Assembly: GCF_044704955.1 (NCBI RefSeq)
Contig: NC_091999.1
Span: 50,220,001-50,284,000, forward strand
Source of the DNA: Pristiophorus japonicus
Taxonomy: Eukaryota
Length of the DNA: 64,000 nucleotides
Direction of reading: 5' to 3'
In this document: positions 8,494 through 61,190 of the stretch, in pieces
How the letters are laid out: each line of letters starts with the position of its first letter
Position numbering within the stretch: the first letter of the stretch is position 1
Made by a program: the position numbers and the translations under genes
Notes under the pieces: generated by a model
The model's input: the letters and a program-made list of their open reading frames with translations, nothing else
The model's database searches: none
What the model was told of the DNA's origin: nothing

Positions 8494-8843
8494 ATCAACT
8501 CATCCAATCAGACTGGGCCCTCGATGGACAACGCCTATGACGAAGTGGCACAGAACAAAACCATCGTCCTTCCCTGTTTCCTTGTATTAGTGCTTGTATC
8601 GGGCATTACCGGGACCTCAAGTGCACTGTGGCACATCGTACGAATGAAGAAGGTCTCACAAGCAAGTGATGTCCTCCTTCTGGATTTAATGAGCACCGAC
8701 TTCTTGATTATCCTGGTCTCTATACTTTCTCTTATACAATTTATCCTTGGAAGCAGATTATGGAGTAATTCCGTGATGTCAGTGCCCTCTTGCGTCCAAT
8801 CAATCTTTATGGCAACGCACTTTTCATGACCTGCATTGCTATT
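8494..8843 (+). pseudogene. Intronless rhodopsin-class GPCR pseudogene (P2Y/LPAR4-6/PAR-like, delta group), 5' half: N-terminus to TM3
   Basis: NSSNQT glycosylation-type N-terminus; TM1 IVLPCFLVLVLVSGITGTSSALW; TM2 VLLLDLMSTDFL; after a frameshift TM3 INLYGNALFMTCIAI, cut by a CR1 tail at 8844. Confidence 0.85.
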
Positions 8844-37765: not shown

Positions 37766-38754
37766 AGCTATCTATCCAGCTGTCCATTTTCCTCCACCCA
37801 CTCGAATGGGATCCGATTTCTGATGTAAATCTCAATAGTATACAAGCATTGGTGAGATGAGTGTTTTACTCAACCTCAGAACTTGAGGTGAAATGTAAAC
37901 GCTGACAAGGGTTGAGGGACTGCTCTATCTAATGGTGGACAGGACGTGTCAGTAGTTCCGTACCTTTATTTGGATCTGGTTTCAAATTCAGACACAGATA
38001 GACGGGATACAGCTGTCCTCCCATATTGGTGGATTGGGTAGGCCAATGTTCCTGAGCTATGTTATTACAGAGTGACAGTGTTCATCTTAGATCTGGTGTC
38101 AGTCGATACAGATATTTTCATCTGTGACTTCCTCACACTACATTTGTACATGCCTGCTCCCATAACCACCGTGCAGTAAATCATGTGTCAGTACATACTG
38201 AGATTTATATCTCCTGACCTCCTCCCACAATATTAGTGTATGACTAGTTCTCACTGCCATTGTGCAGTAGATCATGTTTCAGCACACAATATGATTTCTA
38301 TACCCTGATGGTGACACTAAGCATTTTCCACATTCTTAATCCGAATGGAAAACAGAGATTAGCTTTTATTCAAAATAATTCGCTATCCTTCTGTTCACAT
38401 CCATCATCTACTCCTTGGCATTCAAAAGGACTTTTGTCAATCTACCAAATTGTTTATTGCATCAATACCTTTCTATCTATCAGTCTGCCCAATAATCTAC
38501 ATATTGCTCTATCTATCCTAATTTATATCAACAACTCTCTCTATATGCTTGTACATANNNNNNNNNNNNNNNNNNNNNNNNNNNNNNNNNNNNNNNNNNN
38601 NNNNNNNNNNNNNNNNNNNNNNNNNNNNNNNNNNNNNNNNNNNNNNNNNNNNNNNNNNNNNNNNNNNNNNNNNNNNNNNNNNNNNNNNNNNNNNNNNNNC
38701 CATCGATCTGTCTATCAATGTACATATCTATCTATCTGTCTATCTATCTGTCTA

Positions 38755-39957: not shown

Positions 39958-40244
39958 GTGTGGTACATCATTCAACCGTTTTCCTCATCCTGACGTCCGT
40001 GAAGAAATCACCAGCATCAAATATGCAACAGCTGTGTGTTCAATCCTCGAATTCCGTCCAAAGGGAGTGACCGTGAATTGGCTGAGCACTGGACAACTCA
40101 TGCATTAGGGCTTCGTCACCTCTCCAATCTGTGAAGTGAACTGAAACTTCTCGGTGACCAGTCGGCTGACATTGCCCCTGGTCTCTACCTGCCAGGTCTC
40201 TCATCAAGGGTTCACACAAAGCAGAAACTTCGCCAGATCTCACG
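39958..40244 (+). pseudogene. IGHM: IgM heavy-chain Cmu2 exon (pseudo)
   Basis: HSTVFLILTS(fs)[57 protein letters not shown](del)LVSTCQVSHQGFTQSRNFARSH resembles shark Cmu2; two stops, a deletion, donor reads ATAATG, acceptor lost. Confidence 0.88.
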
Positions 40245-40544
40245 ATAATGGACACAACCCCATGAAGTCCCAAATGATTATGAGCGCGGATGTCAATCAG
40301 AGCTTTTATTCGAATTAGTAAAGAGCATAGAACTTTTTTCATTGCCAAACATACAGATTGGGCTTCCTTTCGTTGTACGTCCTAATCTATGTTCCCTCAC
40401 GGTTCAGGATTCCATAACCTCGTCAAAGGTTTCCCTGAGCGGTGATGTCGGATAGTGAATGAGGTGTCCTTAGTCTGAGGTTTATTCTGAGAAAGGTCAA
40501 TTTCTAATATACAATCGTGCTGTTTATGTTTTCTTCTATTATAA

Positions 40545-40965
40545 TATAAAAGAAAGAACTGCCATGGCCGAACTCCAGTTGTCCTAAAGTGCTTCACCGC
40601 CAAGGAAGTTCTTCTTGAATTGTGGTCACTGTTTTACTGTAGAAATCGCGGCGGCCAATGTTCAGACAGTAAGGTCCCACGAACAGCAATGTGATAATGA
40701 CCAGATAATCTTTTTGTTTAGTGCTGTTTGTTGAGTCGTAAGTATTGTCCAGGACAACTGGGAGAAATGCCCTGCTCATCTTCGAAATAACCCCAAGGGA
40801 TATTTTCCATCCAATTCAAAGGGCAGATGGGGCCTTGGTTTCCGATCTCATCCGAAATACAGCACCTCCCACAATGCAGCGCTCCCGCAGTACTGCACTG
40901 GGAGTGACAGCTCACATTTTTTGTTCAAGAATGTGGAGTGCGACTTGAACCTACAATCTTCTGAT
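40545..40965 (-). mobile_element. Deu-domain SINE (SacSINE1-like)
   Basis: Reverse complement of the 23743-24185 element; B-box rc ACTTGAACC at ~40943. Confidence 0.8.
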
Positions 40966-41014
40966 TCGGGATTTCTCATGGTTCAGGATTTAATAACCTC
41001 GCAAGATGTTCGCC

Positions 41015-41140
41015 CTGACGAAGGGTCATCGACCTAAAACGTTAACTTTTTTGTCTCTCCACAGATGCTGCCTGACCAGCTGAGATTTCCAGTCTTTCTT
41101 TTTTTATTTCAGATTGCAGCATCCGCAGTATTTTGCTCTT
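41015..41140 (+). mobile_element. Penelope-like terminal fragment with hammerhead motif (core mutated)
   Basis: CTGACGA AGGGTC ATC GACCT AAAACGTT AACT ... CCACAGATGCTGCCTGACC. Confidence 0.6.
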
Positions 41141-41239
41141 GATTTCCCTCTGCTCTAATTTCAGACAATATGTCTGCTGCCCTTGGTCTCAGGTTTATAC
41201 TGAGATGGAGCGACAGTAGGTGTTGGAACATTTTGCTGG

Positions 41240-41747
41240 TAACTGTCTCAGGACCCACTGCTGGAAAGGGCGCCTACCCTATTTCGAACATTGTGTTCAG
41301 TTCCATGCACCGCGCTGCAGGATGGATATAGCGGCTTTAGAGCGGGTGCAATGCAAATTCACCCGAATCATACCGGGGCTAAAATAGTTAAATAATGAGG
41401 ACAAGTTGCACAGAATAGGCTTGTATTACTTTGCATTTTGAAGGTAAAGAGGTGATCTAAGTTGTTTTACTTCATAAACGGCATTGTTAGGGTAGAGGGA
41501 AAATATTTCCTTGGTGCTGGATTGAGAACAAGGGGCACAAACTTAAAATTCGAGCGAGCCCATTGAGGAGTGAGGTCAGGAAGGATTCTTTCACACAAAT
41601 GATAATAGTAATCTGGAAACCTCTCCCCCAACAGCTGTTGAGGCGTAGGATCATTTGAAGATGTCAATACTGAGATTGATACATCTTTGTTAGGCAAGGG
41701 CATCAGGCGTTACAGAAATGAGGCGGATAGATGATATTGAGGTATAG
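41240..41747 (+). mobile_element. Old CR1 3' fragment hosting the Gypsy insertion (tail continues 46326-46400)
   Basis: HCVQF, RVQCKFTRIIPGL remnants; 3' UTR TTGAGGTATAG|LTR element|TGCAGGTCATCCAAGATCTAATTGAATGG. Confidence 0.75.
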
Positions 41748-41956
41748 TATTGTGTTCCTAACACAGATGAGAATTCAGAGGAAGGTTAAAGTAAGAGTGA
41801 CCTCAGTCTTTATTAAGAAACTCCAGAGTGAGTAACAGACCTTCGGGGCCAGCTTATATACAGTGCTCTCAAGGGATGCTGGGATCCCTTGGGACTTCTG
41901 GGGATGCGCTCCCTGGTGGCAGAACATGGGAGTGCATGCTTTACAAATGCACAACA
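41748..41956 (-). repeat. 3' LTR of the Gypsy element
   Basis: Direct repeat of 46115-46325; minus-strand TGTTGTG...CACAATA; PPT CTTTGGCGGGGAGTGA adjacent (41957-41972). Confidence 0.93.
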
Positions 41957-44900
41957 TCACTCCCCGCCAAAGTCAAAGTGAAAACAATTTACAAGGTGAG
42001 GCGGTCGGGAGCCTTTCTTTCCCTGGTGGACGGCCTTGATACAAATGTCGGTTCTGGTGTGTTGGCTGTGCCCTCGCTGGGCTGGTGTGTTGTTGGCCCT
42101 GCAGAGCTGCTGGGTGAGCCTGGCCTTGCTGGGCTGTTGGGCGTGATGGGTTCCATTTCCTGGTCCGGCGTGGTGTTGTTGATCGTTTTGGTGTGTGTTA
42201 TGCGTTCGACAAAGGTGGTGTCTGTTGTGGGTTGTTCAAGGCAGTCTATGAACCACAGCCTCGTGTGGTCCAGGTGCTTGTGCAAATTTGTCCATTGTCT
42301 AGTTTGAGTACAAACATCCGACTCCCTTATTTAGCTGTCACCCTGCCCGCGATCAACTTGGGACCATGTCCCTAGTTTAGCACATACATAGGGTCATTCA
42401 GATCAATTTCCCCTGACACAGTGGCACGACCATCGTTTACATTTTGTTGCTGCCGCCTGCTCTCTACCTGGTCATGCAGGTTGAGGTGAACCAGTGAGAG
42501 TCTGGTTTTAAGTGTCCTTTTCATGAGTAGCTCAGCTGGGGGAACCCCTGTGAGTGAGTGGGGTCACGTGCAGTAGCTGAGCAGTACTCGGAACAGGCGG
42601 GTTTGGAGTAAGCCTTCTGTGACTTGTTTGGGGCTCTGTTTCATTGTTTGTACTGCTCGCTCTGCCTGCCCATTGGAGGATGGTTCAAACGGGGCGGAGG
42701 TGCCATGTTTGATCCCATTGCGGGTCATGAATTCTTTAAAATCGGCACTGGTGAAACATGGCCCGTTGTCACTGACCAGTATGTCAGGCTGGCCGTGGGC
42801 GGCAAACATGGCCCTCAGGCTTTCAATGATGGCGGTGGCGGTGCTTCCCGATATTATTTCACATTCAATCCATTTAGAAAAATCATCCACCACCACCAGG
42901 AACATTATACCGAGAAACGGGCCCGCATAGTCGACATGAATCCTCGACCATGGTCTGGATGGTCAGGACCACAAACTTAGTGGTGCCTCTCTGGGCATGT
43001 TGCTCAAATGAGCACACATGCTGCATTGGCGTACACGAGACTGTAAGTCAGAGTCGATATCGGGCCACCACACGTGGGATCTGGCTATCGCTTTCATCAT
43101 AACTATACCCGGGGGTGTGCTTTGGAGATCCGAGATGAACGTGTCCCTGCCCTTTTTGGGTAACACTACGTGGTGACTGCACAACAGGCAGTCTGCCTGA
43201 ATGGACAGCTTGTCCTTTCACCGCTGGAACGGCTTGATTAGCTTTTGTATTTCAACGGGTTTGCTGGCCCAGCTCGCATGCAGTACACAGTTTTTTACTA
43301 GGGACAGCAGAGGTTCTTGGCTTGTCCAAGTCCGAATCTGGTGGTCCGTGATCGGTGATTTATCATTTTCAAACGCTTCCATGTCCATCAACAAGTCTGC
43401 GGGCTGCGCCATCGTCAATAAGTTTGCAGGCTGCGCCATTTACACCCCCATGGTGGGCAATGGTAGCCAACTGAGAGCAACTGTACAGTTATCGGTGCCT
43501 GGCCTGTGGCAGATGGTATAGTTATACGCTGATAGCGCGAGTGCCCACCTTTGTATGCGGGATGAGGCATTAGTATTTATCCCCTTGTTTTCAGTGAACA
43601 GGGATAGGAGGGGCTTGTGATCGGCTTCCAGCTCAAATATGAGGCCAAACAGGTACTGATGCATTTTCTTTACCCCGAACACAAACGTTAATGTCTTTTT
43701 CTCAATCATGCTGTCGGCCCTCTCGGCCTTAGACAAGTTCCTGCAGGCATAGGCGACAGGTTGCAACTTCTCCGCATTGTTAGCTTGTTGTAATGCGCAC
43801 TCGACTCTGTATGACGACGCATCACATGCTAGCACAAGTCTTTTACACGGGTTATACAATACAAGCAGCTTGATGCAGCATAAAATGTTTCTGGCTTTCT
43901 CAAAAGCAATTACTTGTTTTTTTCCCCATAACCTTTAGGCATTAACACATGTAGGGGCTCTAAGAAGGTGCTTAACCCCGGTAGGATGTAACCAAAATAG
44001 TTGAGGAGTCCCAGGTACGACCGCAGCTCCATGACATTCTGTGTCCTGGGCGCGTTCCTGACAGCCTCTGTCATGGCATCTGTGGGCCAAATGCCATCGG
44101 CCGTGATCTCCACGAAAACAACACTTCTGTTGCCATGAAGATGCATTTCGACCTCTTCAGCCCCAGCCGTACGCGATCCAGTCGCTGAAGGACCTCCTCC
44201 AAGATTTGTAGGTGCTCGATGGTGTCCCGACCTGTGAACAATATGTCGTCCTGAAAAACCACCGTGCGTGGGACCGACTTGAGTAGGCTCTCCGTGTTTC
44301 TCTGGAAGATCGCTGCAGCCGACCAAGTTCCAAATGGGTATCTGTTGTAGATGAACAATCCTTGTGCGCGTTGATGCAGGTGAGGCCATTCGAAGACTCC
44401 TCCAGCTCCTGCATCATGTAGGCCGAATTCAGATCGAGCTTGGTGAACATCTTGCCTCCTGCCAGCGTCACAAATACGTCATCTGCCTTAGGTAGTGGGT
44501 ATTTGTCCTGTAGAGAGAAACGATTAATAGTTACTTTATAATCGCCACAAATCCTGACCGTGCCATCACTTTTGAGTACAGGAACAATCGGGCTGGCCCA
44601 CTCGCTGAATTCTACTGGGGAGATGATGCCCCCGCGTTGCAGCCTGTCCAGCTCGATTTCCACTCTCTCCCTCATCATGTGCGGTACCGCTCGCGCCTTG
44701 TGGTGAAAGTGTCGTGCCTCTGGGACCAAGTGGCACCTTCGCCCGGAAAAGTTTCCAATGCCTGGCTCAAAAAGGAAGGACATTTTTTAAGAACCTGGGT
44801 ATATGAGGCCTCATCGACATGTGATAGCGCTCGGATGTCATCCCAGTTCCGGCGGATTTTGCCCAGCCAGCTCCTTCCAAGCAGTTTGGGGTGATCCCTC

Positions 44901-46102
44901 GGGAAAATTAAGAGTGGCAGTTCATGCACCGTGCCCTCGTAGGTGACGTTGACCATGGCGCTGCCCAGGACAGTAATAAACTCTTTGGTGCAAGTTATCT
45001 GTTTCGTGTGAATGGGGCTCAGGAATGGTCTGAGTGTCTTGTTGCACCACAGTCTCTGAAACATCTGTTTACTCAGGTTGATTGGCTAGCGCCAGTGTCC
45101 ATTTCAATGGCTACAGGTAAGCAATTCTATTTTATATTTAGCATTATAGGTGGACATTTCATCAAAAATGTGTGGACCCAGTGTATTTCAGCATCTGCCT
45201 CCTCTCTCTGATGCTCGAAATAGCTTTGATCCACCATGGACCGATCTTCCTCTGCCACATGGTGGTTAGTACATTTTGCCGAGCTTGCAGCTCATCTGCA
45301 AGCTCGTTGGAGGTGCCCCATTGTTCCACAGCTGTTGCAACCATACCCTTTGAACCGGCATGAATAGGCTGAATGGAAGCCTCCTCAAAGCCATCAAGGT
45401 GGAATTGCCTTGCATTCATCCTTTGTTGCGGGCTCTGAGTCATCTGGGTCACCTGAGGCCTTCTGGCAGTTGAAGACTCGTGCGTTTGCCCTGTACATTT
45501 CTGCTCGAAAACACAGTTCCAGTTAATTTATGAACATTGCTAGCACTTGTGTACTGAGAGATTTGTTTGGTGTTTTCACTGGTGGACATAAACGCCTGTG
45601 CTATCGCAATGGCCTTAATGAGGGTAGGTGTCTCTACAATCAAAATTTTCATAGGATGGTCTCGTGGCCAATACCCAGTACAAAAAATCTGAGCATTTGC
45701 TCCAGGTAGCCATTAAACTCACATTGTCCTGCAAGTTGCCTTAGCTCAGCGAAGTAGCTCGCCAATTCCTTGCCTTCAGATCGCTGGCACGTGTAGAACC
45801 GATACCTCGCCATCAACACGCTCTCCCTCAGGTTAAGATGCTCCCGAACCAGTGAACACTGCTCCTCATATGACATATCTGTGGGTTTCACCAGAGCCAG
45901 AAATTCTTCATGAGGCTGTAGGTCGGTGCCCCGCACACCATGAGGAGGACCGCTCTCCTTTTTCCAGTGCTTCCTTCTCCATCCAGCTCGTTGGCTACAA
46001 AGTACTGCTCTAGCCGTTCAACATAGGCTTCCCAGTCCTCACCATCCGAGAAATTCTCCTGGATGCCCCCAGTTTGGTGCATCTTTGCGTTGGATTCGTA
46101 TA

Positions 46103-46112
46103 CTCGTCGCCA
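46103..46112 (-). promoter_or_regulatory. Primer-binding site complementary to the tRNA-Ser(GCU) 3' end
   Basis: TGGCGACGAG 2 nt downstream of the 5' LTR; vertebrate tRNA-Ser(GCU) ends CTCGTCGCCA. Confidence 0.75.
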
Positions 46113-46114
46113 GT

Positions 46115-46325
46115 TATTGTGTTCCAAACACAGATGAGACTGCACACAGGGAGGTTAAAGTAACAGTGACCTCAGTCTTTATTAAGACACTCCAGAATGG
46201 TTAACAGGCCTCAGGGGCCGGCTTATATACAGTGCTCCCAAAGGATGCTGGGATCCCTTGGGACTTCAGGGCATGCGCTGCCTGGTGTCGGAACATGGGA
46301 ATGCATGCTATACAGATACACAACA
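46115..46325 (-). repeat. 5' LTR of the Gypsy element
   Basis: Direct repeat of 41748-41956, roughly 25 differences by eye. Confidence 0.93.
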
Positions 46326-47049
46326 TGCAGGTCATCCAAGATCTAATTGAATGGAGGAACATGCTTGATGGACTGAATGTCATATTTCCTTCTGACCATC
46401 TTTAACAAGGCATGATAAAGGCTCACTAATGATAGAAATGAAAAACTACTTCACACCAACATTACACATGATTCCCATACACAAAAGAGCACTTGGAACG
46501 CCATTGTCCCGACCTTTCACTTCTCCTTGGACGGGGGCTGCAAGTGCTACTTGTACATTTTTATCGCCCCAAAAAATCACAAGACACTTTATTTCGTTTC
46601 GCTACCAAAATCCTGAGTTGGATTTGTTACTCATTTTGAGCCAGTGTCAGTTTAGTGTTGAGCTCTTGAACCTGGGGCAGAGTCATTTTTAGAGCGGTGA
46701 TAATGTTTGGGCACAAGGATCTGTCGTCGAGCGTAATGGAACAAGGGTTTTCGGGAAGAGCGCTATTCAGTTCGTAACACTATTGTGCACGAATGTATTT
46801 AATGTTTTACGCCGGGTATTTGCTTTACAGCACATTACAGGTGGATCTGGATGTAAACACACAGGAAATGTTAAAGAGTCTCCCGGAAACGTTGCCAATG
46901 GGTTGTCCTTCCAATAACGATTTGTTTAAGCGACAGCGAATGCTTGATATCTCAAAGATGATTTATTCTTCTTGTAGGAATGAAGGCTGCATGCTGTTAC
47001 CCTGATTGTGAAGATGAAGCTTGGCTTGATTTATATTTCTGCTTCACAG

Positions 47050-47346
47050 ATTAGATCCAATGCACCGATCCAGAAATCACTCTTCTGTAACCGTCAGTAG
47101 AACAGGCCTACTTGGGACATTATCCTGTGTCGTGTCTAATGGTCCTTATGGAATCAAAGTATCCAGGACTCGAGAAAAGGAGACTTGGAAATCAAAGATT
47201 GCCGTCGAAACCGGCGAAGCTCCCAACAGTGTGATCAGCAACATAAACATCTCGAAACAAGCCTGGCAGAGCGGTGTTGAGTTCTGCTCCGTGATGAGGC
47301 CCCATTATTATAGCGACTATAAGAGATTCCATCCGCAAGGAAAATG
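47050..47346 (+). pseudogene. IGHM: IgM heavy-chain Cmu3 exon (pseudo)
   Basis: Acceptor TTCACAG|; [20 protein letters not shown](fs)[60 protein letters not shown](fs)IRDSIRKEN resembles shark Cmu3; donor reads ATGAGC. Confidence 0.9.
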
Positions 47347-47853
47347 ATGAGCGGAGAAATTGTAGCAACAAGTGAAATGCTCTGACGATTTCCGTGCATG
47401 TGCTAATTGGCTCTATTAAGTGTGTTAATGGACTGTTCTGATAATTGAAATGGTAATTCCACTAAACAATCCGACTAGGACCCGAAATGATGCACTTAAC
47501 TGGAATCTGGATCAGTCCATGAGGGAAAAAGGGAAATATATTTTATTTCTGTTAGATAAAGTTAGCTGGACGAGGCTCGTTTGGAGCATAAACAATGATA
47601 ATGACCAGTTGGGAAGGAAGGTCCGCTTCTGTGATAAAAATGCTGTGTTATTTTCCAGTCCTACTCTTAAAGCACCCAGAGAGAACGATTGCATCCCCCT
47701 CTGCTCCGTGCTGCAAAGCCAGACAGGCCACAGAGGGGAAAAAGGAAATCCTTTAAAAATCAGCACACAACACATTTCTCTCATATCTAACTACCGGTTC
47801 CTTTGTCTTTGGAATTATCCAGTTTATTGACTTTTAAAGTAATTGTTCTGCAG

Positions 47854-48234
47854 CTAAGGATCCGCGGGAACCGGCCGTGTCTGTCCTCCTGCCCTCGGCA
47901 GAAGAAGTCTCCGTTCAAACTTTCTCTACCTTCAACTGCTTAATGAGAGGTTTCTCACCCGAAGAGATCTTCGTCAACTGACAAGCCGGTGGATTCCGGC
48001 AACTAGAAGAACACCGAGGTGATGGCGGAGAACGGCAGCAGTTCCTTCTTCATCTACAGCCTGCTATCCATTGCAGCCGAGGAGTGGGCCAGCGGCGCCT
48101 CTTACTCATGTGTGATGAGACATGAAGCGGTCCCCGTGAAGATCACCAACAGAACCGTCAATAAGTCCAGTGGTAAACTGACTTTTGTGAACATTTCATT
48201 TAAGCTGGTAGATAAGGTGAATTCTTGTCAATGA
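47854..48234 (+). pseudogene. IGHM: IgM heavy-chain Cmu4 exon plus secretory tail (pseudo)
   Basis: Acceptor CTGCAG|; [42 protein letters not shown](del/fs)[62 protein letters not shown], internal donor G|GTAAAC at 48172/3, tail [20 protein letters not shown] with penultimate Cys. Confidence 0.95.
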
Positions 48235-48262
48235 GAATCTCTCGATTGCATTTAAATTCTTA

Positions 48263-48268
48263 AATAAA
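48263..48268 (+). terminator. Polyadenylation signal of the secretory form
   Basis: AATAAA 28 nt after the secretory-tail stop. Confidence 0.7.
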
Positions 48269-48674
48269 ATACTGTAAAGGCCTTTTCTTCCAATTGCGAG
48301 TTAAATACATAGCCACTCAATTAATATTGTTTTGCTACCCATTTTTGCGAACGCGGGAGGCTGCTAAACTGAAGCAGGCTATTTACAGGAGTCGGGTCCA
48401 AGGCTTGTACAGCCAAAGTTCCCAGCTCAGATAAACCACTGGTTGGAGACAGGGTGAAGCTCTTTCATGACAAGTTTCCACAATGTAACTTCAGCAACTT
48501 TCCTCCCACTGGAGGAATCTTTAACGTTCCCATTTCCGACAAACAAATGCAGCCATTTAGATATTGGTGTCCCTGTTTCTGATGTTGTCCATCCCTTCAG
48601 AATTGAGGCCAGTTTTATTTTGAAGCTTCGCATCTTCTGGAAACTAAAAAGAGGGCCAGATACGTACATGAACT

Positions 48675-49160
48675 GCACCTCCCATTATCACACCAGAAAG
48701 CGAGGACAGGGAATGGTTAACCCACTGTCCCTTCAACTCGCCAGCAGAGAAAGGGGAAAGGATAATGGTTAACACCCTGTACCTCACATTCAACCACCAG
48801 AGAGAGGGGAAAGGACAATTGTTAACCAAATGTACCTCACACTCAAACACCAGAGAGAGGGGGAGGACAATTGTTCACCCAATGTACCTCACACTCAACC
48901 ACCAGAGAGAGGGGAAAGGACAATTGTTAATCCAATGTACCTCACATTCAACCACCAGAGAGAGGGGAAAGGACAATTGTTAACCCAATGTACCTCACAC
49001 TCAACCACCAGAGAGAGGGGAAAAGGCAATTGTTAACCGAATGTACCTCACACTCAATCACCAGAGAGAGGGGAAAGGACAATTGTTAATTCAATGTACC
49101 TCACACTCAACCACCAGAGAGAGGGGAAAGGACAATTGTTAACCCAATGTACCTCACACG
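48675..49160. repeat. 53-bp minisatellite, ~9 copies, in the Cmu4-TM1 intron
   Basis: Unit AATGTACCTCACACTCAACCACCAGAGAGAGGGGAAAGGACAATTGTTAACCC; starts at 48881, 48934, 48987. Confidence 0.95.
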
Positions 49161-49554
49161 CCCACCATCCGCCCCCCGTCCCTACCGCAGAGAGGGGAAG
49201 TCAACCAATCTCTATTCTGTGAACTCAGTAGCAACCAGTAAAATGATAGTTTCCAACTCGCTGTGAGAAAACGTTAAACTTGCCGCATATGCATCATATT
49301 GTATAATAAATATTGTTCAACATTTTAGCTTTAACTAGTATTTGGCTAAATCTATATCAGTTATTCGTAAACTAACTGATTGAATTTTAATAGTCAAAAT
49401 GTAAACTGGTTATTCAATCCTCTGCAGGTTTTTTCATGGTTATCGCCAAGATAATTCCGAGGTCCATTGTTGAATTGTTGAAATCCATCAACTGACATCA
49501 CATTGCGTCTCACACGGAAACACTTTTACATAGAGTGGGCGAGAATGCCTGTAA

Positions 49555-50220
49555 AAGTGAGTGTGTGTCTCTATGTGTATGTGTGTTCGTGGTTGTGTGT
49601 AAGTTTGTGTGTTTTTGTGTAAGTGCACACTTCCAAACAAACACACCCAGACTTACAAATAAACAAACACATCTTCACACTAACACAGAATAATATAGGT
49701 ATCCAGAATATAATGCACACGTTATTGTCAGACTCAGTTACTGGTACTCTCTGAAACTTTGAGTAAACATACACAATCTTACACAAAGTACACAAACACA
49801 CGCATTAACACACAGATTTACACACACATAACCACACATATCAACACAAACACACATACACAAATCACACACACAAATACACACGCAGTTACACTCAAAC
49901 TCACACAGTTACACATAAAAAGACAAACATAGACCTCAACATTCAAAAACGCTTACATATACACATAAGGTACATGCACATTACTACACAGAACACGCAC
50001 ACTTATATATGTAAATACAAATATGCAAAAACACACAAAGACTTACATATAAACATACACACACTTACATAAATACGCGCACAATTACATATAACATACA
50101 CAGTTACATATTAACCTACACATTAAAACACAAACACAGGGAAAACGAAAACAAGAGATCATGATCCACACATATGCAAACAGTAAAACGCACAAAACAC
50201 ATCAGGATATAAACATATGT
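49555..50220. repeat. Degenerate (TG)/(CA)-rich low-complexity tract
   Basis: Directly visible. Confidence 0.8.
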
Positions 50221-50810
50221 GGAATTCAATGCACTTTTTATAAAAACACAGCATGCAATGATGGCACTGAATAAGTAACTCCTGAAAGCATAATTCTCAC
50301 TTTCTCAATTCCTACACTGAATCCATGAACTTGTTGGAAACTGGTACAAGTTAATTATGTTCAGAGCACTGCCATAACAAGTAAATAAGCAATATTATAA
50401 CTCACAACTGATCAGTTACCTTGTCTCCTTGACAGTCTCCAAATAAGTAGCTATCTATACCTATCGTTAAATTATCGATATCAATCAGAAAACCTCCATC
50501 GATCTTACATTATACTATTCCCGAATGGTAGATCGTAGAAAATTGATGCAAGATCAATTAGCGTGTGACATTGAAGGCAACATTCATATTTTCCAACACG
50601 GACTATATGAAGATCATAAAAGAAGAATGACTGTGGAGGTAGGAACAGAGATAGATTGCCGAGAGTGATTAACTTAACACAAGGTATATATTGACAATTA
50701 AATTAGAGAACAAAATAATAATTCATGGAAAAGAAAAGAGAATATATGATCACATGATATCTTGGTTTCATAAGCGATCTCAATATATTTCTATCTCTTA
50801 ATCCCCGTAG

Positions 50811-50938
50811 ATTCCTCAGACCACATCTCGAGTGAAGACTATGAGGATGAGTGCGACAACATCTGGACAACGGCTTCCACATTCATCATCCAGTTCTTCC
50901 TGAGCATTTCCTACAGTGCTGCCGTCACTCTGATGAAA
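50811..50938 (+). pseudogene. IGHM: IgM membrane exon TM1
   Basis: Acceptor CCCGTAG|; DSSDHISSEDYEDECDNIWTTASTFIIQFFLSISYSAAVTLMK with the conserved antigen-receptor TM motif; frame open, donor reads GCGAGA. Confidence 0.93.
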
Positions 50939-51076
50939 GCGAGAAGATTCAATCCATTCACATCGATCTGTTTGAAGCGGTTTGACAAATCTCTGGATGT
51001 TTCATTGATAAAAACCTTGCGATAAATGCCCCATACCACTAGATCTTCACTTCACTCTTTAATACCTCTTTTACAG

Positions 51077-51085
51077 GTCAACTGA
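51077..51085 (+). pseudogene. IGHM: IgM membrane exon TM2 (coding part)
   Basis: CTCTTTTACAG|GTC AAC TGA = VN* (VK* expected), 138 nt after TM1; AATAAA at 51148-51153. Confidence 0.8.
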
Positions 51086-51844
51086 ACGGTTGAATTTCGG
51101 ATGCCGTGGATTTTCCTCTCTGTTTATTAACATCTCTGTGTCCTGAAAATAAATATGTCCATCGTGCTTCTCAGAGTTAAATGCTTCAATTAATAGATCC
51201 GAATCTATAGCTGAGAATATCATAACCGGGATTTCCATCTTTCTGTTTGAAATGTGTGAATTAATCGTGGCCATAATGTAAATATATCTCAGAGTTTCAT
51301 CGTTGTTTGAATATTTCTTGTGGAAATAAGTCACTTCTCTCATTCCTAATTCTCAATTATTCGCTTCCTTTTATGTTGAGCCCTTATTTTCTCTCCCAGA
51401 TGCCTGTTACATTGGTACAGATAGCCGGCAGCTCAGACCACCGTTGTTGTGGTCTCAATGTGCTGTTATATTCAATTTGTGCTACATTTTTGAAAAATCT
51501 CTCGATAAATTGTTCTTTGCGAAATTGTTAATAAATCTGGGTGGCGATTGGACTAAGTTGGACATGTTGTTGAATTCCTTTCTCTGAGGCTCATCCGCAC
51601 CGTTGCATATCCCATTACACTTTGTTTTATTTCCCTGACTGATATTTTTTACACATCCTGTTTGGGTTTTGTTTAAATCCAAGTCCCTTCGGTTAAGGAA
51701 CCACTGCACCACCCAGTGTCCTATCAGAATAAAGACACCTTTATCTCTGCCTTTGTAAGTCAAGCCCCAGAGTGCAATTGACAGCACAGCGACACCGCAG
51801 TCCCTCTAACATCATGGTCTGTCACAGTCATATGCCAGGTTCTA

Positions 51845-53155
51845 TTAAAGAGCAAGGGGGGAGGAAGAAGAATGGAAGAGCTGTCGTGGTTGGGGCTTCA
51901 ATAGTCAGGGAAGCAGACAGTCGGTTCCGCGGCCGCAGCTGTGACTCCAGGATGATATGTTGCCTCACTGGTGCTGGGGTCAAGGATGTCACCGAACGGT
52001 TGCAGGGCTTTCTGGGTGGACGAGGATGAACAGCCAGAGGTCCTGGCCCATATCGGGACAAACGACATGGGTCGTAAGAGGGATGAGGTTCTGCAGGCAG
52101 AATTTAGGGAGCTAGGAGACAGATTAAAAAGCAAGACCTCAAAACTAGTAATCTCCAGATTAATTCAGTTGTCAAGAGCTAGTGAGTACGGAAATAGGAG
52201 AATAGAGCAGGTAGATGTGTGACTGGATAAATGGTACAGGAGGAAGAGCTTTCGAATCCTGAGGCATTGGAACCGCTTCTGGGGGAGGTGTGAACTGTAC
52301 AAGGCGGAACGGGTTTCACCTCAAAAGAGCCGGGACCAATATCCTCGCGGGATGATCGGGTGGGGTTGCGGGGGTTGAGAGGGGTTGCTAGTGCTGTTGA
52401 GGAGTGTTAATATTATCTTGGCTTGGGAATGGGAACAGGAGAATAGATTCTCTTTGAAGGGGAATTAATAATGGAGCGCAGGGAAATGGCAGAACGTTGA
52501 ACAAATAATTTGTACCGGTATTCACGGTAGAAAACACCAAAAACATCCCAACAGTGGATAATCAAGGGGCTATAGGTAGCGACCAACTTAATCCAATCAC
52601 TATCACTAATGAAGTGGTATTAGGTAAAATAATGAGACTAAAGTTGGACAAGTCTCCTGGACCTGATGCATTACATCTTAGGATCTTTAGAGAAGTGGCT
52701 GCAGAGATAGTTGATGTATTTGTTGTAATCTACCAAAATTCCCTGGATTCTGGGGTGGTCCCAGCAGATTCGAAAACCACAAATGTAATGCGACTATTTC
52801 AAAAATCAGGCAGCTACAAATCAGGAAACTAGACCAGTTCGCCAAACATCTGTCATTGTGAAAATGCTGGAGTCCATTATTTAGGAAGCAGTAGTGGGAC
52901 ATTTGGAAAGCAGGATTCAATCAAGAAGAGTCTGCATTGTTTTATGAAAGGGAAATCACGTTTGAAAAATTTGCTGGAGTTCTTTTCAGATGTAACGAGC
53001 AGGGTAGATAAAGCGTAATCATTAGATGTGTTGTATTTTGATTTCCAGAAGGCATTCGATAATGTACCACATAAGTGGTTACTGCACAAGTTAAAAGCTC
53101 ACCTGGTTGTGTAATATATTACCATTGATTGAAGATTGACTAACTAACAGAGCAA
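51845..53155 (+). mobile_element. CR1 fragment with ORF1 SGNH-esterase region joined by deletion to ORF2
   Basis: VVVGASIVR, CCLTGAGVKDV, AHIGTNDMG (ORF1); KSPGPDALH, DFQKAFD (ORF2). Confidence 0.85.
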
Positions 53156-54625
53156 ACCATACAATAGCCAAGAGATCAGGAGAAATGAAAGGTGGAAGGA
53201 ACATAGTTATGATTATACATTCTGGGGAGGTTTTCTTGCCAAGATATGCAGTTACTGTTGAAGAAGCTGGTAATGAACAAGGGAATTGCAGCTGCAAAAA
53301 TCCCCAACCACCTTTAATGCTGGCGTAGCAGGAAGAGCTGCATCTGAGTTTCCTGTGGGCGGCTGGGCATGTGAGCCGCTCTTACGCCCGGATGAAACAT
53401 GCTGCAATAAGCACTGAGACACCGCCTACTTTTCAAATGCATCTGTTTGACGTACAGTCCACCATTTGTTTCTGACAAACAATTGGCCATATATGTTTGA
53501 TGTGCTGTCAGCCGTGTTAGTGTGACGTAGCCATGTTTCTGTGACGTCTCATTACATGAACTAATGTTTCTTTCCAACCATTTAAATAAAACATGACTTA
53601 AATTCCCACAAAGGAAACAATTTTACTTTCTCAATAAAAAGTAGCAAATAGCCGACAGAAATAAAGATACAGGCAGCGACGATTAAAGTGTTTGACAGGT
53701 TTGAGCCACAATGCCCTTCACACTACCCAGATGCTTTGCCGTTTGGCGAGTAGCACATGTGCGAACAGTTCTCCCATGGAGCACCGCGGCCCGGGGACCA
53801 CATTGAGCCTTTTTTGGCCGCTTTGCATTGTGAAAGCTCTGTTATTCACGACTCCTTAAATCATTGAAAGGATCTGAGCTAAAGGAACCAGTGAATGCCA
53901 ATTTATTCACGCCCCCTTAAGGCAATCAGAGCTCTCCGTATGAGCCAATAGCACTTGGTCAGATGTATTTCAGGTTAACCAAAGCATGGAAATTATATTA
54001 TTGAGTCAGAGACCGGAAAGTAAGAATAGTAAATTGTACAACAATCTTTATATTCCCCAGAGTCCCCGAAACATACAACTATTTTCTCTTTCATGTCCTC
54101 CCTCATTCGGTTGAGTGATTGCAAGATCCTGTTTTCAAGTTTGGAAAGTTACAGTTGTCTTTAGGTGAAACTTACAGAAAGTAAGGGCCGGAGCCTTCCA
54201 CGAGCAGAACAACACGATAAATATCCAGCTTTAAAGGAATACACGGGGTGAAATCACCCATAGAGGCAGAATATAGGAACTAGAATCTTTCCTATTAAAT
54301 AAGCGACAAGCTGACCTTGGAGCTCCTGGAGCTGATCTGAACATCCATCCACCAAGTCAAGGGAAAACAGCTGATAAGAATCAGAAAGGACAGTTTAACA
54401 TGTCAGTTCATTCGATGGTGGTCGATTTACAGGTCGATTTTCGGACCGATTGAATAATTCAACTTGTTTTCCCGGCCGCTCCTGGAATCATTTGGGTGAC
54501 AATTGGATCCGAGGTTAATTTGGTATCCTCTCTGTGTGTCTGAGCGCCTGACAGCGCGCTGCACACTGTGGCTGCATCTGCCCGCGATTCCAACAGGCAG
54601 GAGCTGGGCCCAACAGGCCAATGGC

Positions 54626-54664
54626 ATTTTTTGTACGATGGTCAGGCTGCTTTCCATCACTGCG
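54626..54664 (-). promoter_or_regulatory. 23-RSS of the inverted V segment (heptamer mutated)
   Basis: Minus strand CGCAGTG + 23 nt + ACAAAAAAT. Confidence 0.85.
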
Positions 54665-54970
54665 AGTCTTAGGGCGCTGTAATACACGCCAGCGTCAGTA
54701 GGGTGCAGCCCGGAGATGTTTAAGCGGATTAATTTATTCGCGGTCTGGAGCTCTGCAGAGAAACGGGTTTGAGCAAAATCTGCATTATTCTCACCACCGC
54801 TCGAATATTGCCTCAGTGTAAACGTGGGCTGTGTGTCTGGGTGTTACCAGTACCAGAATAAATAATACAAGCTTCATGCAGTTTCATAATACAGCTTAAA
54901 GTGACCATTTCACCCTGTGCCTTAACCCCTGAGGACAGCTGGTGAGTGACAGAGTCTACTTTACTCAGAT
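54665..54970 (-). pseudogene. TRDV: TCR alpha/delta-type V segment (most like V-delta), inverted, pseudogene
   Basis: Acceptor TTGTCCAG|; DLSKVDSVTHQLSSGVKAQGEMVTLSC(fs)YETA*SLYYLFWYW*HPDTQPTFTLRQYSSGGENNADFAQTRFSAELQTANKLIRLNISGLHPTDAGVYYSALR then RSS; possible decayed leader 55170-55224 with GTGGGT donor; alpha vs delta not certain. Confidence 0.9.
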
Positions 54971-55819
54971 CTGGACAACTTGTTCAAACAGGAAAAGGTC
55001 AGACCGGCCTGTAATTACAATTCAGTTTCAACACATATCAGAAAAGATAGAAAAGATGAAATAGGTTTTGTCCACAATTATCTTTCAGAAATGTGCTGAG
55101 TCATCGTGTTGTCACTGCTGCTTTGTAAAAGGGGTTTGTATTTTTGAAGACACCCATTCTAATACCCACCCTCAATAATCGTGTGTCGTGTCTCAGGATG
55201 CTCTCGGTTGTGCTGTGAGACCATCGGTGGTGAGCTGGCAGCCACTGTACGGAAACACTCCGAGCTGGGCTACACTTAGTGTACTTATACGGGAATGGTT
55301 CTGTTTTTAAACACCAGTGCTGGGAATGAAATGCCAACCTGGTTATTGTGACTGAAATTTGCAGGATTATTGATGGCTTTGTTTTATTCCCGGGTCAATT
55401 CATTCTCCAGCGTTCGGTTAGGATACTGGTAACCGTGCATCCAGTGAGCTTTCCCTCACAGGTCAGAGAACTACAATGATTCTGTATTTTAGCGGAGTGA
55501 TGTATAGATCTGTGATATTGGAAGTATGCTATCTGCTGTTACTGGTCAAACAATTCAACAGACATAAAGAATAAACGCCCCCTGTATTTTAAACAGCGTT
55601 TTGAGAACCGCCCTTCTCCCATTTGCATTTAAAATGTTTCTTTTTATTTACTATGGTGAGTAATGACCTGCGTCGCTGTAATGATTAACTTAAAGTTCCA
55701 TGATTTCCAGATTCTAACATTTAAAAGAGAGTGAATAGAGGGAGGAGCGCTTTTCAGCAATTTCCCGTTCGTCTATTTAATGTTCACGGGAGCAGAATGC
55801 GGGGAAATTGTACAAAAGG

Positions 55820-56180
55820 GCAGGGTGAGTGGAGGCCGGGTTCAAACGCAGAGGATGAGTGTTGGGCAGGTATAAATCGCCAGGCTGTGGTGCAGGGCAG
55901 ATTCACGGCCCCCGGAGTGAGGTGTTGGACGGGATCAAACCACCAGACTGAGGTGTTGGGCGTGTTCAGGACGCTAGGGTAGGTGTAAGGTGAACCAATA
56001 GCCTCATGGTGAGGTGTATGGCGTGTTTAGAACCCAGGGTGAGATATAGGGCGATTTCAGTGCCCTAAAGGTGAGGTGTGGAGCCGGTGCAGAGCACCAG
56101 TGTGAGGTGCAGGGCGGGTTCAGAACCCAGGGTGAGATGTGGAGTGGGTTCAGACCCCTCAGGCGAGGTGTGGGCCGGGT
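55820..56180. repeat. G-rich ~30-32 bp tandem repeat
   Basis: Unit GGTGAGGTGTGGGGCGGGTTCAGAACCCAG, about 11 degenerate copies. Confidence 0.8.
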
Positions 56181-57254
56181 TCTTTTTAATAAAAGATCAA
56201 CATCAGCATGGCCGGAAAAACTGTCCTTACAACTTTCACTCATATTAGAAATGGATGTGGCGCAGAAATCAAATAAAATACAGGCGGATTCGATTTATTG
56301 TTCGCCCCGTTAATATCGATCTCTACCATTGGTATAATTTATGGCATCAGAAATCAGATCTCAGTGTGTGTCAATGATTCACATTTTAATGTTGCGTTTT
56401 CGATCTGCCACACTCTTCTAGTCACGTGTTCTGTCCACAGTTTACTAAACAAAGCTATCGTTTGAAATGACTGATGTCTTTTTTTGATGATTGTGCCCGA
56501 TGTACCGACCCAACCCATTGCGGATTTCACACATTAATCTTCAATTCATTCCACAATTTGCACAACTTTTGGAATAAAGCAGAATTGAACACAATGCCCG
56601 GGATCTGATCCACAAAATGTATATTGTGACCTGACAACATCTACAGATATTCTGTGAATTGTTCAGATATCGGGGGAAAGTGTGGGATATTCACTGACCT
56701 GATGCAGTTCCTCCTAATGGGAAGCTGGGTTAGAGCAGTCCTGAAATAATATGCCGAGCAGCAGCAAAGGTTTTACATCGTTTTACTGAAGACAGAGAGA
56801 AGGAAGTTCGTAGCATTATGGATAAAGAGTGGAGACAGGGGAAGAGAAGGTACATGCAGGCACGGAAGTAGCACCGAAAGACAAAGGGTGAATTGTGGCA
56901 CCACAGACATGATTTCTGAAGTTTATTTTGTCATAAATACGAGTTGAAATCACAAACTAATATTAATCCGCCGTTTTACTCTCGCTGCATCGAGATAAAA
57001 CACGAAGGAATTATTTTCAAGTGGCAGGCGTTTGTGTTAATACTTTCCTCTTCAACCATCATTTCAGGAACTGCCTGTTCCACTGTGTCTTGGTGTCTCC
57101 ATTGTAACATTAAATAATAGTAATAGGCATGATCTCAAACAAAATAGCCATCATCGCCACCATTACATATTTAAACAATAATAACATCTGGGTTACAGCA
57201 GTCAAGGGGAGAATGGATTTTCACTGAGAAAGAAATACTTATTAAGAAGTGATA

Positions 57255-58680
57255 GAATAAGAACATAACAACATAAGAAATGGGAACAGGATTAGGCCAT
57301 GCACTCCCTCGAGCCTGCTCCGCCATGCAATAAGATCAATGTTGATCTGATCATGAACTCAGCTCCACTTCCCTGCCTGCTCCCCATAACCCATCATCCC
57401 CTTTATCATTTAAGTAACTCTATTTATGTCTTAAATTTATTTTAAGTCCCAGCATCCACAGTTCCCTGCGGCAGCGAATTCCAAAGATTTACAACACTCT
57501 GAGATAAGAAATGACTCCTCATCTCTGTTTTAAATGCACGGCCCCTTATTCTAAGATCATGCCCTCAAGTTCTACTACATCCCATCAGTAGAAACATCTT
57601 CTCTGCATCCACGTTGCCAAGCCCTCTCATACTCTTATACGTTTCGATAAGATCACCGCTCATACATCTGCATTCCAATGGGTAGAGGCCCAATCTACTC
57701 AACGTTTTCTCAGAAGTCACCCACTCATCCCCGGAATCAACTTAGTGAAGCTTCTCTGAACTGCCTCCAAAGCAAGTATATCCTTTCATAAATATGGAAA
57801 CCAAAACTGCACACAATATGCGGCCTCACCAATACTCTATACAGCTGGAGCAAGACATCCCGGCTTTTAGACTCCATCTCCTTTGCAATAAAGGCCAAGA
57901 TCCATGGGCCTTCCTGATCACTTGCTGTACCTGCATACGATCCTTTTGTTTTTCATGCACCAGCACCTCCTGTTCCCGCTGAACTGTGGCACTTTGCAAT
58001 CTTTCTCCATTTAAATAAGAACTTGCTCATTGATTTGTTCTGCCAAATCTCTTGAGCTCCCACTTTCCAGCATTATACTCCATCTGCCAAATTCTTGCCC
58101 ATTCACTTAGCCTGTCTATGTCCTTTCGCAATTTTTTGTGTCCTCCTCACACATTGCTTTTCCTCTCATCTTTTTATCATCAGCAAAATTGGATACTTTA
58201 CTCTCAGCCCCTTCTTCCTAGTTGTTAATATAGATTGTACATATCTGAGGTCCCAGCACTGATGCATGCGGCGCTGCACTGGTTGCCAACCAGAGAATGA
58301 ACAATTTTTCCCGTCACTCTGTTTTCTCTTAGTTAGCCAATCCTCTATCCATGCTAATATATTACCCCAACCCTTTGAACTATTATCTTGTTCTGTAATC
58401 TTTTATGTCAAATGGCCTCCGGAAATCCAAATATATCACATCCACTGGTCCCCCTTTATCCACCCTGTTCGTTAGATCCTCAAAGAATTCCAGCAAATTT
58501 GTCAAAAATGATTTTGCTTCATAAATCCATGGTGACTCTGCTTGACCGAATTTTGCTTTTCCAAATGTCCTTTTACTGTTTCTTTCAGAATGGACTCCAA
58601 CATTTTCCCAACCACAGATGTTAGGCTAATTGGTCTATAGTTTTCTGCTTTTTGCTGACTCCTTTTATAAACAGGGATTT
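57255..58680 (-). mobile_element. CR1 LINE 3' half, degenerate
   Basis: (CATAAGAA) tail at 57255-57280; minus-strand FADDKK and NYRPISLTS remnants. Confidence 0.85.
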
Positions 58681-58934
58681 TACATAATGATGAGGAGTAG
58701 TGCGAGATGGTTCCACATTACATTCCCTGAGTCTGAAGATATGCGGTCCTGGAAACCCTCTGTCGAATCAGAAATAGGGTACCATGCCCAACTGCCCCGC
58801 TGATCCAACCAATGCGAAACAGGGAACTGCAGCTGCAATCTCTCCAATAACACAGAGCATGCAAGGCGGTTAATGGCTCCCATGAACAGACTAACTATTT
58901 GTACTACGTCGCCCTTCTGCGCATATGCACAGAA

Positions 58935-58955
58935 ATGTGTCTGTGTTTGTGTATA

Positions 58956-58995
<40 letters not shown>

Positions 58996-59090
58996 TGTGT
59001 GTGTGTGTGGCTGAGTGCATGTCTATATGTGTATGGATGTCTGTGTGAGTACGGCTGTCTGTGCATGTGTGTATGTGTATATGTATGTCA
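58935..59090. repeat. (TG)n microsatellite
   Basis: Directly visible. Confidence 0.95.
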
Positions 59091-59506
59091 ATTTGTCCGT
59101 GTTGCCAATGCACTATGCCATAGTTGTATGGTCGGCAGGAGTGAGCTCTCTGATCACTTTGCAAAGATCATGATCTCTATGTACAGTGGTGGCTGTTTAG
59201 AGAGGTAAAACTGGGCGGGAAGAAGAAATCCCAGCCAAGCTGATAAGATCCCCGTCCTATTTGAGTTTTCCATTGCAGGCCCGGTAAAGGCAGTGATGAC
59301 AGTCTCTTTTTCCTGGAGTTTAGACTGGAACAATTGAAGTGAAACTCTGCCTGTCTTTGATTATTGTCCTGTACAGAGGTCTGTGATATTGGAACCATTC
59401 TTTAAGATTCTCCAATTCTCATACAACTTCTCGTTTCCATCTACGGGTGCTTCTTCTCTCTCTGCTTCTCTTTCTTTCCTGCTGTGTGTCTGCTGTTTAT
59501 TTTCAG

Positions 59507-59781
59507 GGATTACTAGCGGAGACTCTGTGTCCCAAGGAGTCTGGTCAGAGTTGGGTGCAGATTCAGCAATAACTTGCAGTTACTCTGTATTAGCTACAAG
59601 CTATGGCCTGTTCTGGTATCTGCAATATCCCCACCAGGCCCCCCAGTATCTGATCAGAATCGATAGTTAAGGCATTTGAACACTTCAGCAGTAATCTCAA
59701 CCGGACACAAAGAACTTTTCACTTATCCATGAAAGGCATTATGATCAGGAACAGTGCCGTGTAGTACTATGTGCGATGACC
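59507..59781 (+). pseudogene. TRAV: TCR alpha/delta-type V segment, pseudogene
   Basis: Long polypyrimidine acceptor TTTTCAG|; GITSGDSVSQGVWSELGADSAITCSYSVLATSYGLFWYLQYPHQAPQYLIRIDS*(fs)EHFSSNLNRTQRTFHLSMKGIMIRNSAV*YYVR*; possible decayed leader ending 59204 (AG|GTAAAA); alpha vs delta not certain. Confidence 0.88.
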
Positions 59782-59820
59782 CACAGTGAATAAGAATCCC
59801 TTGGTCCACATACATAAACA
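59782..59820 (+). promoter_or_regulatory. 23-RSS
   Basis: CACAGTG + 23 nt + ACATAAACA. Confidence 0.9.
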
Positions 59821-60723
59821 TGGCACAGGTCAGCAAGTGTGGGCTCTGGAAAAATACCAGGGATTGAATCCTACAGAGTTTGTTGAGGAAATAAATGTGA
59901 AAGTACAACCTGATCCCAGAGTTTTTCTTCAGTTAAAGTCATTGCTGTCAGTGTTGGGCAACGTAAAATATCGCGAGCATTTTATTGTACCATCAAATCC
60001 AGACATTTCCACTCCAGTATTACACAACCCTGCAGATCTCTCTGATTGCTAACAGGCTCAATCTGTGAAAGTAAAAGTCCTGGGTGATGCAGATCTGCCA
60101 TTTGCGTCTTTCAAAAGCGATCTAATCTCAAAGTCGGCCTCGGGGGCGGGAAAATTCAGAGCTTCTGGGATGCTAATACCACAAGTAGTGACTGATTGAA
60201 ATCAGCTCTTTACTGGTATCGTATCCCGGTTTTACTATTATCGTGTCCTAGTGGCTTTAAGACTGTAACGATTAATGATGCTGATAAATTGGACGATATT
60301 CTAAATACTAGGGCTTGAAATTAATTTGGAATTATTTACTTTTTCACCTTAATTATGGCGAGATCTAGATATCTATTGATAGAGACATTGAGGTCGACCG
60401 AAAGGTATACAAAGCCAGAAAGAGGCAGTCCGATTGACAGAGACACGGTGCAGGAGTGTGAGACAGATAGAAAGACACACAGGCACTGACTGGGAAGGAA
60501 AGAGTTTGGAGGGAGCCAGCAGTAATTGGTCCTCAACTGACAGTGATTCGTAAACAGCTGGCGTTGGATCTGAGAGAACATCCAATCCAAGCCCTGAGAA
60601 ACGCACCTCAGTTTCGAAATAAATGAAGACTGCCGCTGATTTGGGTTTGCTCTTTATTATCAGACCAGAAACGGCAACATATTTAAAACATTCAATTATT
60701 GTACATCGAAATCTAAACCAGAC

Positions 60724-60772
60724 ATTTTGTGTTCCCCATTTTCACTGCAGATAATAATTTCCATGCTGACCG
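60724..60772 (+). pseudogene. Leader exon of the third V segment (start codon lost)
   Basis: ATT TTG TGT... = (M>I)LCSPFSLQIIISMLT+G, phase 1, donor GTGACT, 85-nt intron to the V exon. Confidence 0.6.
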
Positions 60773-60857
60773 GTGACTCCATGTTTAAAGGGTCAGTTTG
60801 TGTTCCATGGGTTATATTTTCTATCAGACTTTTAACACATTCTGCATTTTGTTACAG

Positions 60858-61151
60858 GAAGGAGTGGCAAAGATTCAGTGTCCCAGCATCCGTCTGAAGT
60901 AATGATTCAGGAGGTCAGACCTTAAAACTGAACGGTAATTACTCAGCAACGTACACTGCCCCAATTCTCTTCTGGTATTTCCAATATCCCGGGGAAGATC
61001 CGAGATATTTACTGAACATATACGGCAAGGGGTCTCCTGATTTCCCAGGATGATTTTCTGCTGCTTTGGACCAAGACTAGTAAACAGTTCCTTTAAATAT
61101 ATCCGGGGCTCTTGTCTCTGAATCTGCCGTGCATCACTCTGCGCTGACCCC
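60858..61151 (+). pseudogene. TRAV: TCR alpha-like V segment, pseudogene
   Basis: Acceptor GTTACAG|; GRSGKDSVSQHPSEVMIQE(fs)QTLKLNGNYSATYTAPILFWYFQYPGEDPRYLLNIYGKGSPDFPG*FSAALDQD**TVPLNISGALVSESAVHHSALT; both Cys lost. Confidence 0.9.
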
Positions 61152-61190
61152 CACACTGCTACACGGACGCAGTCAGTCCATACAAAAACA
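61152..61190 (+). promoter_or_regulatory. 23-RSS
   Basis: CACACTG + 23 nt + ACAAAAACA. Confidence 0.9.

Follow-up and report, generated by a model that had tools for sequence, protein, structure and literature searches.

Does this stretch of DNA hold a whole IgM cluster lodged among TCR alpha/delta V segments, and would such a cluster record the entry of Ig V domains into TCR delta? An initial annotation of the locus had proposed both. We examined the locus within a window of 64,000 nt from Pristiophorus japonicus (NC_091999.1, 50,220,001 to 50,284,000), and all coordinates given below are positions in this window. We asked what remains of the IgM cluster, to which class the neighbouring V segments belong and how the two came to lie side by side.

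An IgM constant region without its 5' half

Searches with each IgM exon individually bore out the annotated series of Cmu2, Cmu3, Cmu4 with its secretory tail, TM1 and TM2, in this order on the plus strand. The series begins with a pseudo-Cmu2 exon at about 39970..40250 (plus strand, ends approximate), which matches the C1-set at E 0.0016 and is matched by mouse IgM C domains at E 1.4e-7. It contains two in-frame stops (40106 and 40142) and, relative to a normal C domain, short deletions; it is Cmu2 rather than Cmu1 by exon order alone. The pseudo-Cmu3 exon (47050..47340, plus strand) has an open frame with weak Ig-C similarity (E 4.7e-5), but its conserved Trp has been replaced and a clear GT donor is missing after the exon. 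The pseudo-Cmu4 exon (47854..48234, plus strand) ends in a mu-type secretory tailpiece that matches IgM: for its tail piece, the Cmu4 domain and tailpiece of solved IgM chains give E 1.6e-22. This tailpiece carries an N-I-S site for N-glycosylation and the penultimate Cys, and an AATAAA signal follows the exon at 48263. Cmu4 is damaged by a frameshift near 47978 and a TAG stop at 48004.

Two membrane exons lie downstream on the same strand. TM1 (50811..50938) encodes an acidic spacer and the conserved Ig transmembrane motif, and its donor is GC, not GT. A micro-exon encoding Val-Asn-stop (51077..51085) is preceded by a polypyrimidine tract and AG, with AATAAA at 51148, 63 bases past its end; it is TM2 by position and form only. 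The locus thus contains a series of C1-set exons that ends in a mu-type secretory tailpiece and is followed by TM1 and TM2 (TM2 by form only). As the Cmu4 tail matches IgM, the C1-set matches agree and both membrane exons are built as expected, we identify the series as IgM. The open frames and usable splice sites of a working IgM gene have been lost (stops, frameshift, GC donor), and the earlier description of a decayed constant region holds, with stops in Cmu2 and Cmu4 and the frameshift in Cmu4.

The Cmu2-Cmu3 intron contains a decayed Ty3/Gypsy-type LTR retrotransposon of ~4.6 kb on the minus strand (41748..46326). Its two LTRs (41748-41957 and 46115-46326) are 87% identical (K2P 0.13) and enclose minus-strand matches to RT_RNaseH (E 1e-25) and then rve, the integrase (E 5e-16). 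This is an LTR pair around a pol region ordered RT, RNase H, integrase, as expected of Ty3/Gypsy elements. A GPCR-like ORF and the LINE ORFs had no Pfam match.

One part of the initial annotation that did not stand is the completeness of the cluster: a search of the 10 kb before Cmu2 gave no VH, D, JH or Cmu1, and the upstream region includes N runs. The plus strand from 29.7 to 39.9 kb contains LINE copies only, tblastn gave no match to V-like sequence upstream of Cmu2, and no Ig-domain pattern was found there. A candidate JH, marked by an RSS-like site at 38936, was ruled out, as no J-like coding sequence lies beside it. What was found is therefore not a complete shark IgM minicluster (VH-D-D-JH-Cmu1-4-TM). 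As the remnant lacks a VH, it records nothing on the entry of Ig V domains into TCR delta, and the proposal that the locus is a record of this event is not supported.

Four V pseudogenes behind the IgM exons

The V segment nearest to the IgM exons, pseudo-V1, is a TCR alpha/delta-type V exon with a 23-RSS on the minus strand (54626..54971, exon 54971-54665). It lies 3.54 kb past TM2, and its RSS (CGCAGTG-23-ACAAAAAAT, minus strand, 54664-54626) points toward the IgM exons. The V1 frame is shifted in CDR1 and interrupted by a stop in FR2, its second Cys has become Ser and its heptamer is mutated (CGCAGTG). Searched against 1.84 billion proteins, V1 has a best match at E 3.3e-32, far above chance, and its nearest relatives in this database are elasmobranch TCR chains. 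Four of the relatives (P0012, P0013, P0014 and P0030) are V-J(-C) chains, of which P0014 aligns with TCR delta chains end to end (E 6e-28). P0012 may be an alpha or a delta chain. A further relative, P0027, is named TCR alpha chain-like. Similarity to horn shark gene models continues past the RSS into the 3' flank of V1 (54448..54625, minus strand). The sequence at 55141-55307 may be the 5' arm of an inverted repeat by V1, the 3' arm of which is seen in horn shark models.

Two more V segments lie on the plus strand. Pseudo-V2 (59508..59820) is of TCR alpha type and keeps a consensus heptamer, still intact, in its plus-strand 23-RSS (CACAGTG-23-ACATAAACA, 59782-59820); its CDR2 and FR3 are disrupted by stops and frameshifts. 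Pseudo-V3 (60870..61190) is likewise a TCR alpha-type V with a plus-strand 23-RSS (CACACTG-23-ACAAAAACA, 61152-61190). It contains four in-frame stops (in FR1, before FR3 and in FR3), its first Cys has become Gly and its second Cys Ser. A fourth V relic on the minus strand consists of FR1 only (57015..57110), and a leader relic lies at 58814-58683; both are collinear with a two-V horn shark model, P0022. No inverted repeats were found around V2 or V3, and no inverted copy of segment B was found.

Three TCR-type V segments with a 23-RSS had been annotated after TM2. Their class and their RSSs stand, but the first is inverted and the relics number four. A V-set exon followed by a 23-RSS was found in V1, V2 and V3, so that a recognisable 23-RSS is kept in three of the four V pseudogenes, and the V regions most closely related to them occur in chains with a TCR alpha or delta constant region. 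None of the four combines an intact frame, both Cys and a CAC heptamer. No DNA similarity was found among V1, V2 and V3, and the V segments in the spacer behind the IgM exons represent no fewer than three distinct TCR alpha/delta families. Gene models of horn shark and bamboo shark have V-a next to V1-type and V3-type next to V1-type segments as neighbours. Word-indexed homologue searches with V1 and V2 pieces gave no candidates, and the contig encoding P0002 had no match in metagenome scans. TRDC, TRAC, D and J segments were not found in the window.

Origin of the arrangement

The claim that IgM lies beside TCR alpha/delta V segments in cis is upheld for the layout; there is, however, no working V array in the window, as all V segments are dead. 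We consider it probable, at about 80%, that the locus is a non-functional fossil in an elasmobranch antigen-receptor region where IgM miniclusters are interspersed with TCR alpha/delta-type V segments. Of a duplicated IgM minicluster only the exons from Cmu2 through TM2 remain, and the layout would be the product of block duplication and subsequent decay rather than of a recent IgM insertion into a working V array. We expect no segment in the remnant to rearrange or to yield protein.

The strongest competing explanation, although unlikely, is that an IgM cluster was inserted into a working TCR alpha/delta V array and so records the use of Ig V by TCR delta. The TCR-type V segments lying 3.5-10 kb from the IgM exons are consistent with such an insertion, as is the occurrence of the same V families in the V arrays of other sharks, whereas the lack of VH, D and J in the remnant and the death of every V segment argue against it.

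It is very improbable that the neighbourhood is an assembly artefact in which a misjoin brought IgM exons and V segments together. The only repeat able to hide a misjoin is a LINE fragment of high copy number between TM2 and V1 (51780..53160, plus strand). This repeat of ~1.4 kb has very high depth, and in public runs from one sample the contigs on this stretch are at most 768 bases long, with none bridging the fragment in the three of four runs examined. However, the sequence from 38700 to 64000 is without any N run, a normal long read is longer than the repeat, and the two flanks of the repeat have similar, single-copy depth.

The least probable alternative, that the V segments are Ig light-chain, Ig heavy-chain or non-rearranging V domains and not TCR-type, could appeal to a camelid VH, which is the best solved-structure match for the C-terminal half of V1, and to an Atlas search, which returned generic V-set clusters only. 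However, wherever a top V1 match has a name specific to a class, or J and C regions attached, it is TCR-type: these are V-J-C chains, one of them delta-like, and one protein named TCR alpha chain-like. For V2 and V3 the best matches are TCR alpha V (E 2e-7 to 6e-6), with light chains behind (about 1e-3).

Comparison with known antigen-receptor loci

TCR alpha/delta-type V exons have been described between elasmobranch IgH clusters (Flajnik et al. 2025, Sci Adv, PMC12227049). Neighbourhoods of IgM and TCR V segments in sharks and rays were thus already in print in 2025, and the window holds an ordinary decayed instance. Like the layout in that study, the window has IgM minicluster sequence in cis with adjacent TCR alpha/delta-type V exons; unlike it, the copy in the window is a pseudogene that lacks its 5' part, and its V segments, too, are pseudogenes without exception. 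TAILV and VH embedded in the TCR delta locus, and trans-rearrangement of Ig-V to TCR-delta in the nurse shark, provide a second comparison (cited in PMC12227049). Both cases mix Ig and TCR segments in one chromosome region. The window is the reverse of the TAILV/VH case, as it has TCR-type V segments by Ig constant exons and is without Ig V.

TRDV3 and TRBV30 are examples of an inverted V behind a constant gene. Both the TCR delta and the TCR beta locus contain this arrangement (PMC12227049), and V1 has the same geometry, lying 3' of constant exons in opposite orientation and with its 23-RSS turned toward them. Unlike in those loci, the constant gene behind V1 is IgM, the V1 heptamer is mutated, its frame is broken and no D or J remains for it to join. 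From the cross-species alignments we raise the tentative, rather doubtful possibility that an inverted TCR delta-type V ~3.5 kb behind Cmu is a regular part of IgM miniclusters in this shark rather than a stray relic, and that V1-type cassettes are bounded by inverted repeats. If so, the inverted V behind Cmu would mirror the inverted V after the constant gene in TCR delta and beta loci, and in intact copies it could join the D segments of the cluster by inversion. Cassettes bounded by inverted repeats could also explain the spread of TCR-type V segments among IgH clusters.

As no segment in it can rearrange, the window alone tests no open question. The issue of inverted TCR-type V segments behind Cmu, and of repeat-bounded V cassettes beside intact IgM clusters, is a genome-wide one. 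Set beside the known loci, the window adds a further shark example of mixing between an IgH minicluster and TCR alpha/delta-type V segments, and illustrates a route of decay that comprises loss of the 5' half, insertion of a retrotransposon and point damage.

Remnants of an IgM constant gene

As claimed in the initial annotation, the plus strand carries decayed Cmu2, Cmu3 and Cmu4 exons, the last with its secretory tail, together with TM1 and TM2. This is borne out by exon matches, by in-frame stops and by a frameshift. Each IgM exon was searched singly, by reference. The Cmu4 piece at 48007-48231 matched IgM chains of solved structure over their final domain and tailpiece (E = 1.6e-22), and its tail has kept the N-x-S site and the penultimate cysteine. 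An acceptor at 47853 precedes the Cmu4 exon, whose frame shifts near 47978 and meets a TAG at 48004. Cmu3 (47050-47340, +) has an open frame, with the conserved tryptophan gone and no clear donor after the exon. The exon at about 39970-40250 (+), whose name Cmu2 rests on exon order only, encodes a C1-set domain that matched the C domains of mouse IgM (E = 1.4e-7) and is interrupted by stops at 40106 and 40142. TM1 (50811-50938, +) encodes an acidic spacer as well as the conserved Ig transmembrane motif and has a GC donor, and TM2 (51077-51085, +) reads Val-Asn-stop and is followed by AATAAA at 51148. Past the secretory end of Cmu4 and ahead of TM1 lies a tandem array of a 53-base unit (48691-49159, 8.9 copies, 88% matches).

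The 5' side of the cluster and its retrotransposon

The IgM cluster had been taken to be whole, which proved incorrect. Upstream of Cmu2, the plus strand from 29.7 to 39.9 kb contains LINE copies only. The tblastn check for V sequence, proposed with the initial annotation, gave no V-like match upstream of Cmu2, and no Ig-domain pattern was found there either. The sole RSS-like site upstream of Cmu2, at 38936, was rejected, as no J-like sequence adjoins it. The cluster is therefore without VH, D, JH and Cmu1, with N runs remaining further upstream.

The Cmu2-Cmu3 intron holds a minus-strand Ty3/Gypsy-type element with domains for RNase H and integrase (E = 1e-25 and 5e-16, respectively). As its LTRs (41748-41957 and 46115-46326) are 87% identical (K2P 0.13), the insertion is old. 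Two similar LINE reverse-transcriptase blocks upstream of Cmu2 (29816-32200 and 36425-37830), arranged in the same order, share matching flanks at about 32.7 and 38.4 kb and look like a local duplication. An ORF at 8416-8829 (+), putatively one portion of a GPCR gene that a CR1 element interrupts, had no Pfam match.

V segments behind the IgM exons

The TCR-type V segments with 23-RSS that had been placed after TM2 were recovered: three carry an RSS, the first of them 3.54 kb past TM2. The inverted orientation of V1 and a fourth relic, V-a, had been missed. V1 (54971-54665, -) ends in the RSS CGCAGTG-23-ACAAAAAAT at 54664-54626, which points toward the IgM exons. The V1 frame shifts in CDR1 and is stopped in FR2, and serine has taken the place of the second cysteine. 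V2 (RSS 59782-59820, +) is broken in CDR2 and FR3 by several stops and frameshifts; in V3 (RSS 61152-61190, +) the frame is interrupted by four stops, the earliest of them in FR1, and neither cysteine is preserved. V-a retains only FR1 (57110-57015, -) and a leader relic (58814-58683, -), and is collinear with the two-V horn shark gene model P0022, which has a V1-type segment after V-a. Between V1 and V-a, a unit of about 31 bases is repeated eight times (55909-56183). No DNA similarity was found among V1, V2 and V3, which thus belong to different families.

To classify these segments, V1 was run against 1.84 billion proteins. Its best matches were elasmobranch V regions, with two horn shark gene models at the top (P0001, E = 3.3e-32) and a Pristiophorus japonicus protein (P0011) also among them. 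V-J or V-J-C chains make up four of the matches (P0012, P0013, P0014 and P0030). The CDR3 of P0014 is long, and this protein matched TCR delta chains end to end at E = 6e-28, versus 7e-23 for an alpha chain, and a further match, P0027, carries the source name TCR alpha chain-like. When the comparison was limited to solved structures, camelid VH came out closest to the C-terminal half of V1. The best match of both V2 (E = 6e-6) and V3 (E = 2e-7) was a TCR alpha V, with light chains behind at about 1e-3. In the bamboo shark gene model P0006, the first V shares 46% identity with V3 and the second is of the V1 type. Judged from these sequence matches, the V segments behind the IgM remnant belong to TCR alpha/delta families, and all are dead.

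TCR alpha/delta-type V exons between elasmobranch IgH clusters were described by Flajnik et al. (2025; PMC12227049), so such a layout was already known; Pristiophorus japonicus was not among the four species examined there. Of the mixed-locus interpretation in the initial annotation, the position of IgM exons beside TCR alpha/delta-type V segments stands, and the cluster is incomplete. The IgM and V parts are identifiable, and so is the damage to them. This region is a fossil, and we infer that no segment in it rearranges. A duplicated IgM minicluster probably lost its 5' half, took in a retrotransposon and decayed, and the spacer behind it holds the dead V segments of the TCR alpha/delta families.

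Contiguity and a possible V cassette

There is no N run in 38700-64000. The sole public sample that covers the stretch has contigs of at most 768 bases here, none of them bridging. In these contigs, the LINE fragment at about 51.8-53.2 kb (51780-53160) is high-copy, its depth exceeding that of its flanks by a factor of hundreds to thousands, and the depth on both sides of it looks single-copy. A misjoin could hide only at this fragment. Throughout 50700-55300, mismatches between the contigs and the window run at about 2 per 100 letters; the contigs derive from a different individual, a different haplotype or a close relative.

Past the RSS, the 3' flank of V1 goes on matching the horn shark models P0001 and P0067 over some 80 codons, to 54448 (54448-54625, -). 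In horn shark, the tail of gene model P0067 comes after a V1-type 3' flank on the same strand. This tail matches the window at 55141-55307 (+), directly upstream of the V1 leader and in the orientation opposite to that in horn shark. A second repeat arm was not found around V1 in the window. Taken together, the matches suggest that inverted repeats flanked a V cassette and that the window has kept only one of the two arms. If an inverted TCR-type V is a regular part of IgM clusters, it would mirror the TCR delta and beta loci, in which an inverted V lies behind the constant gene (PMC12227049).
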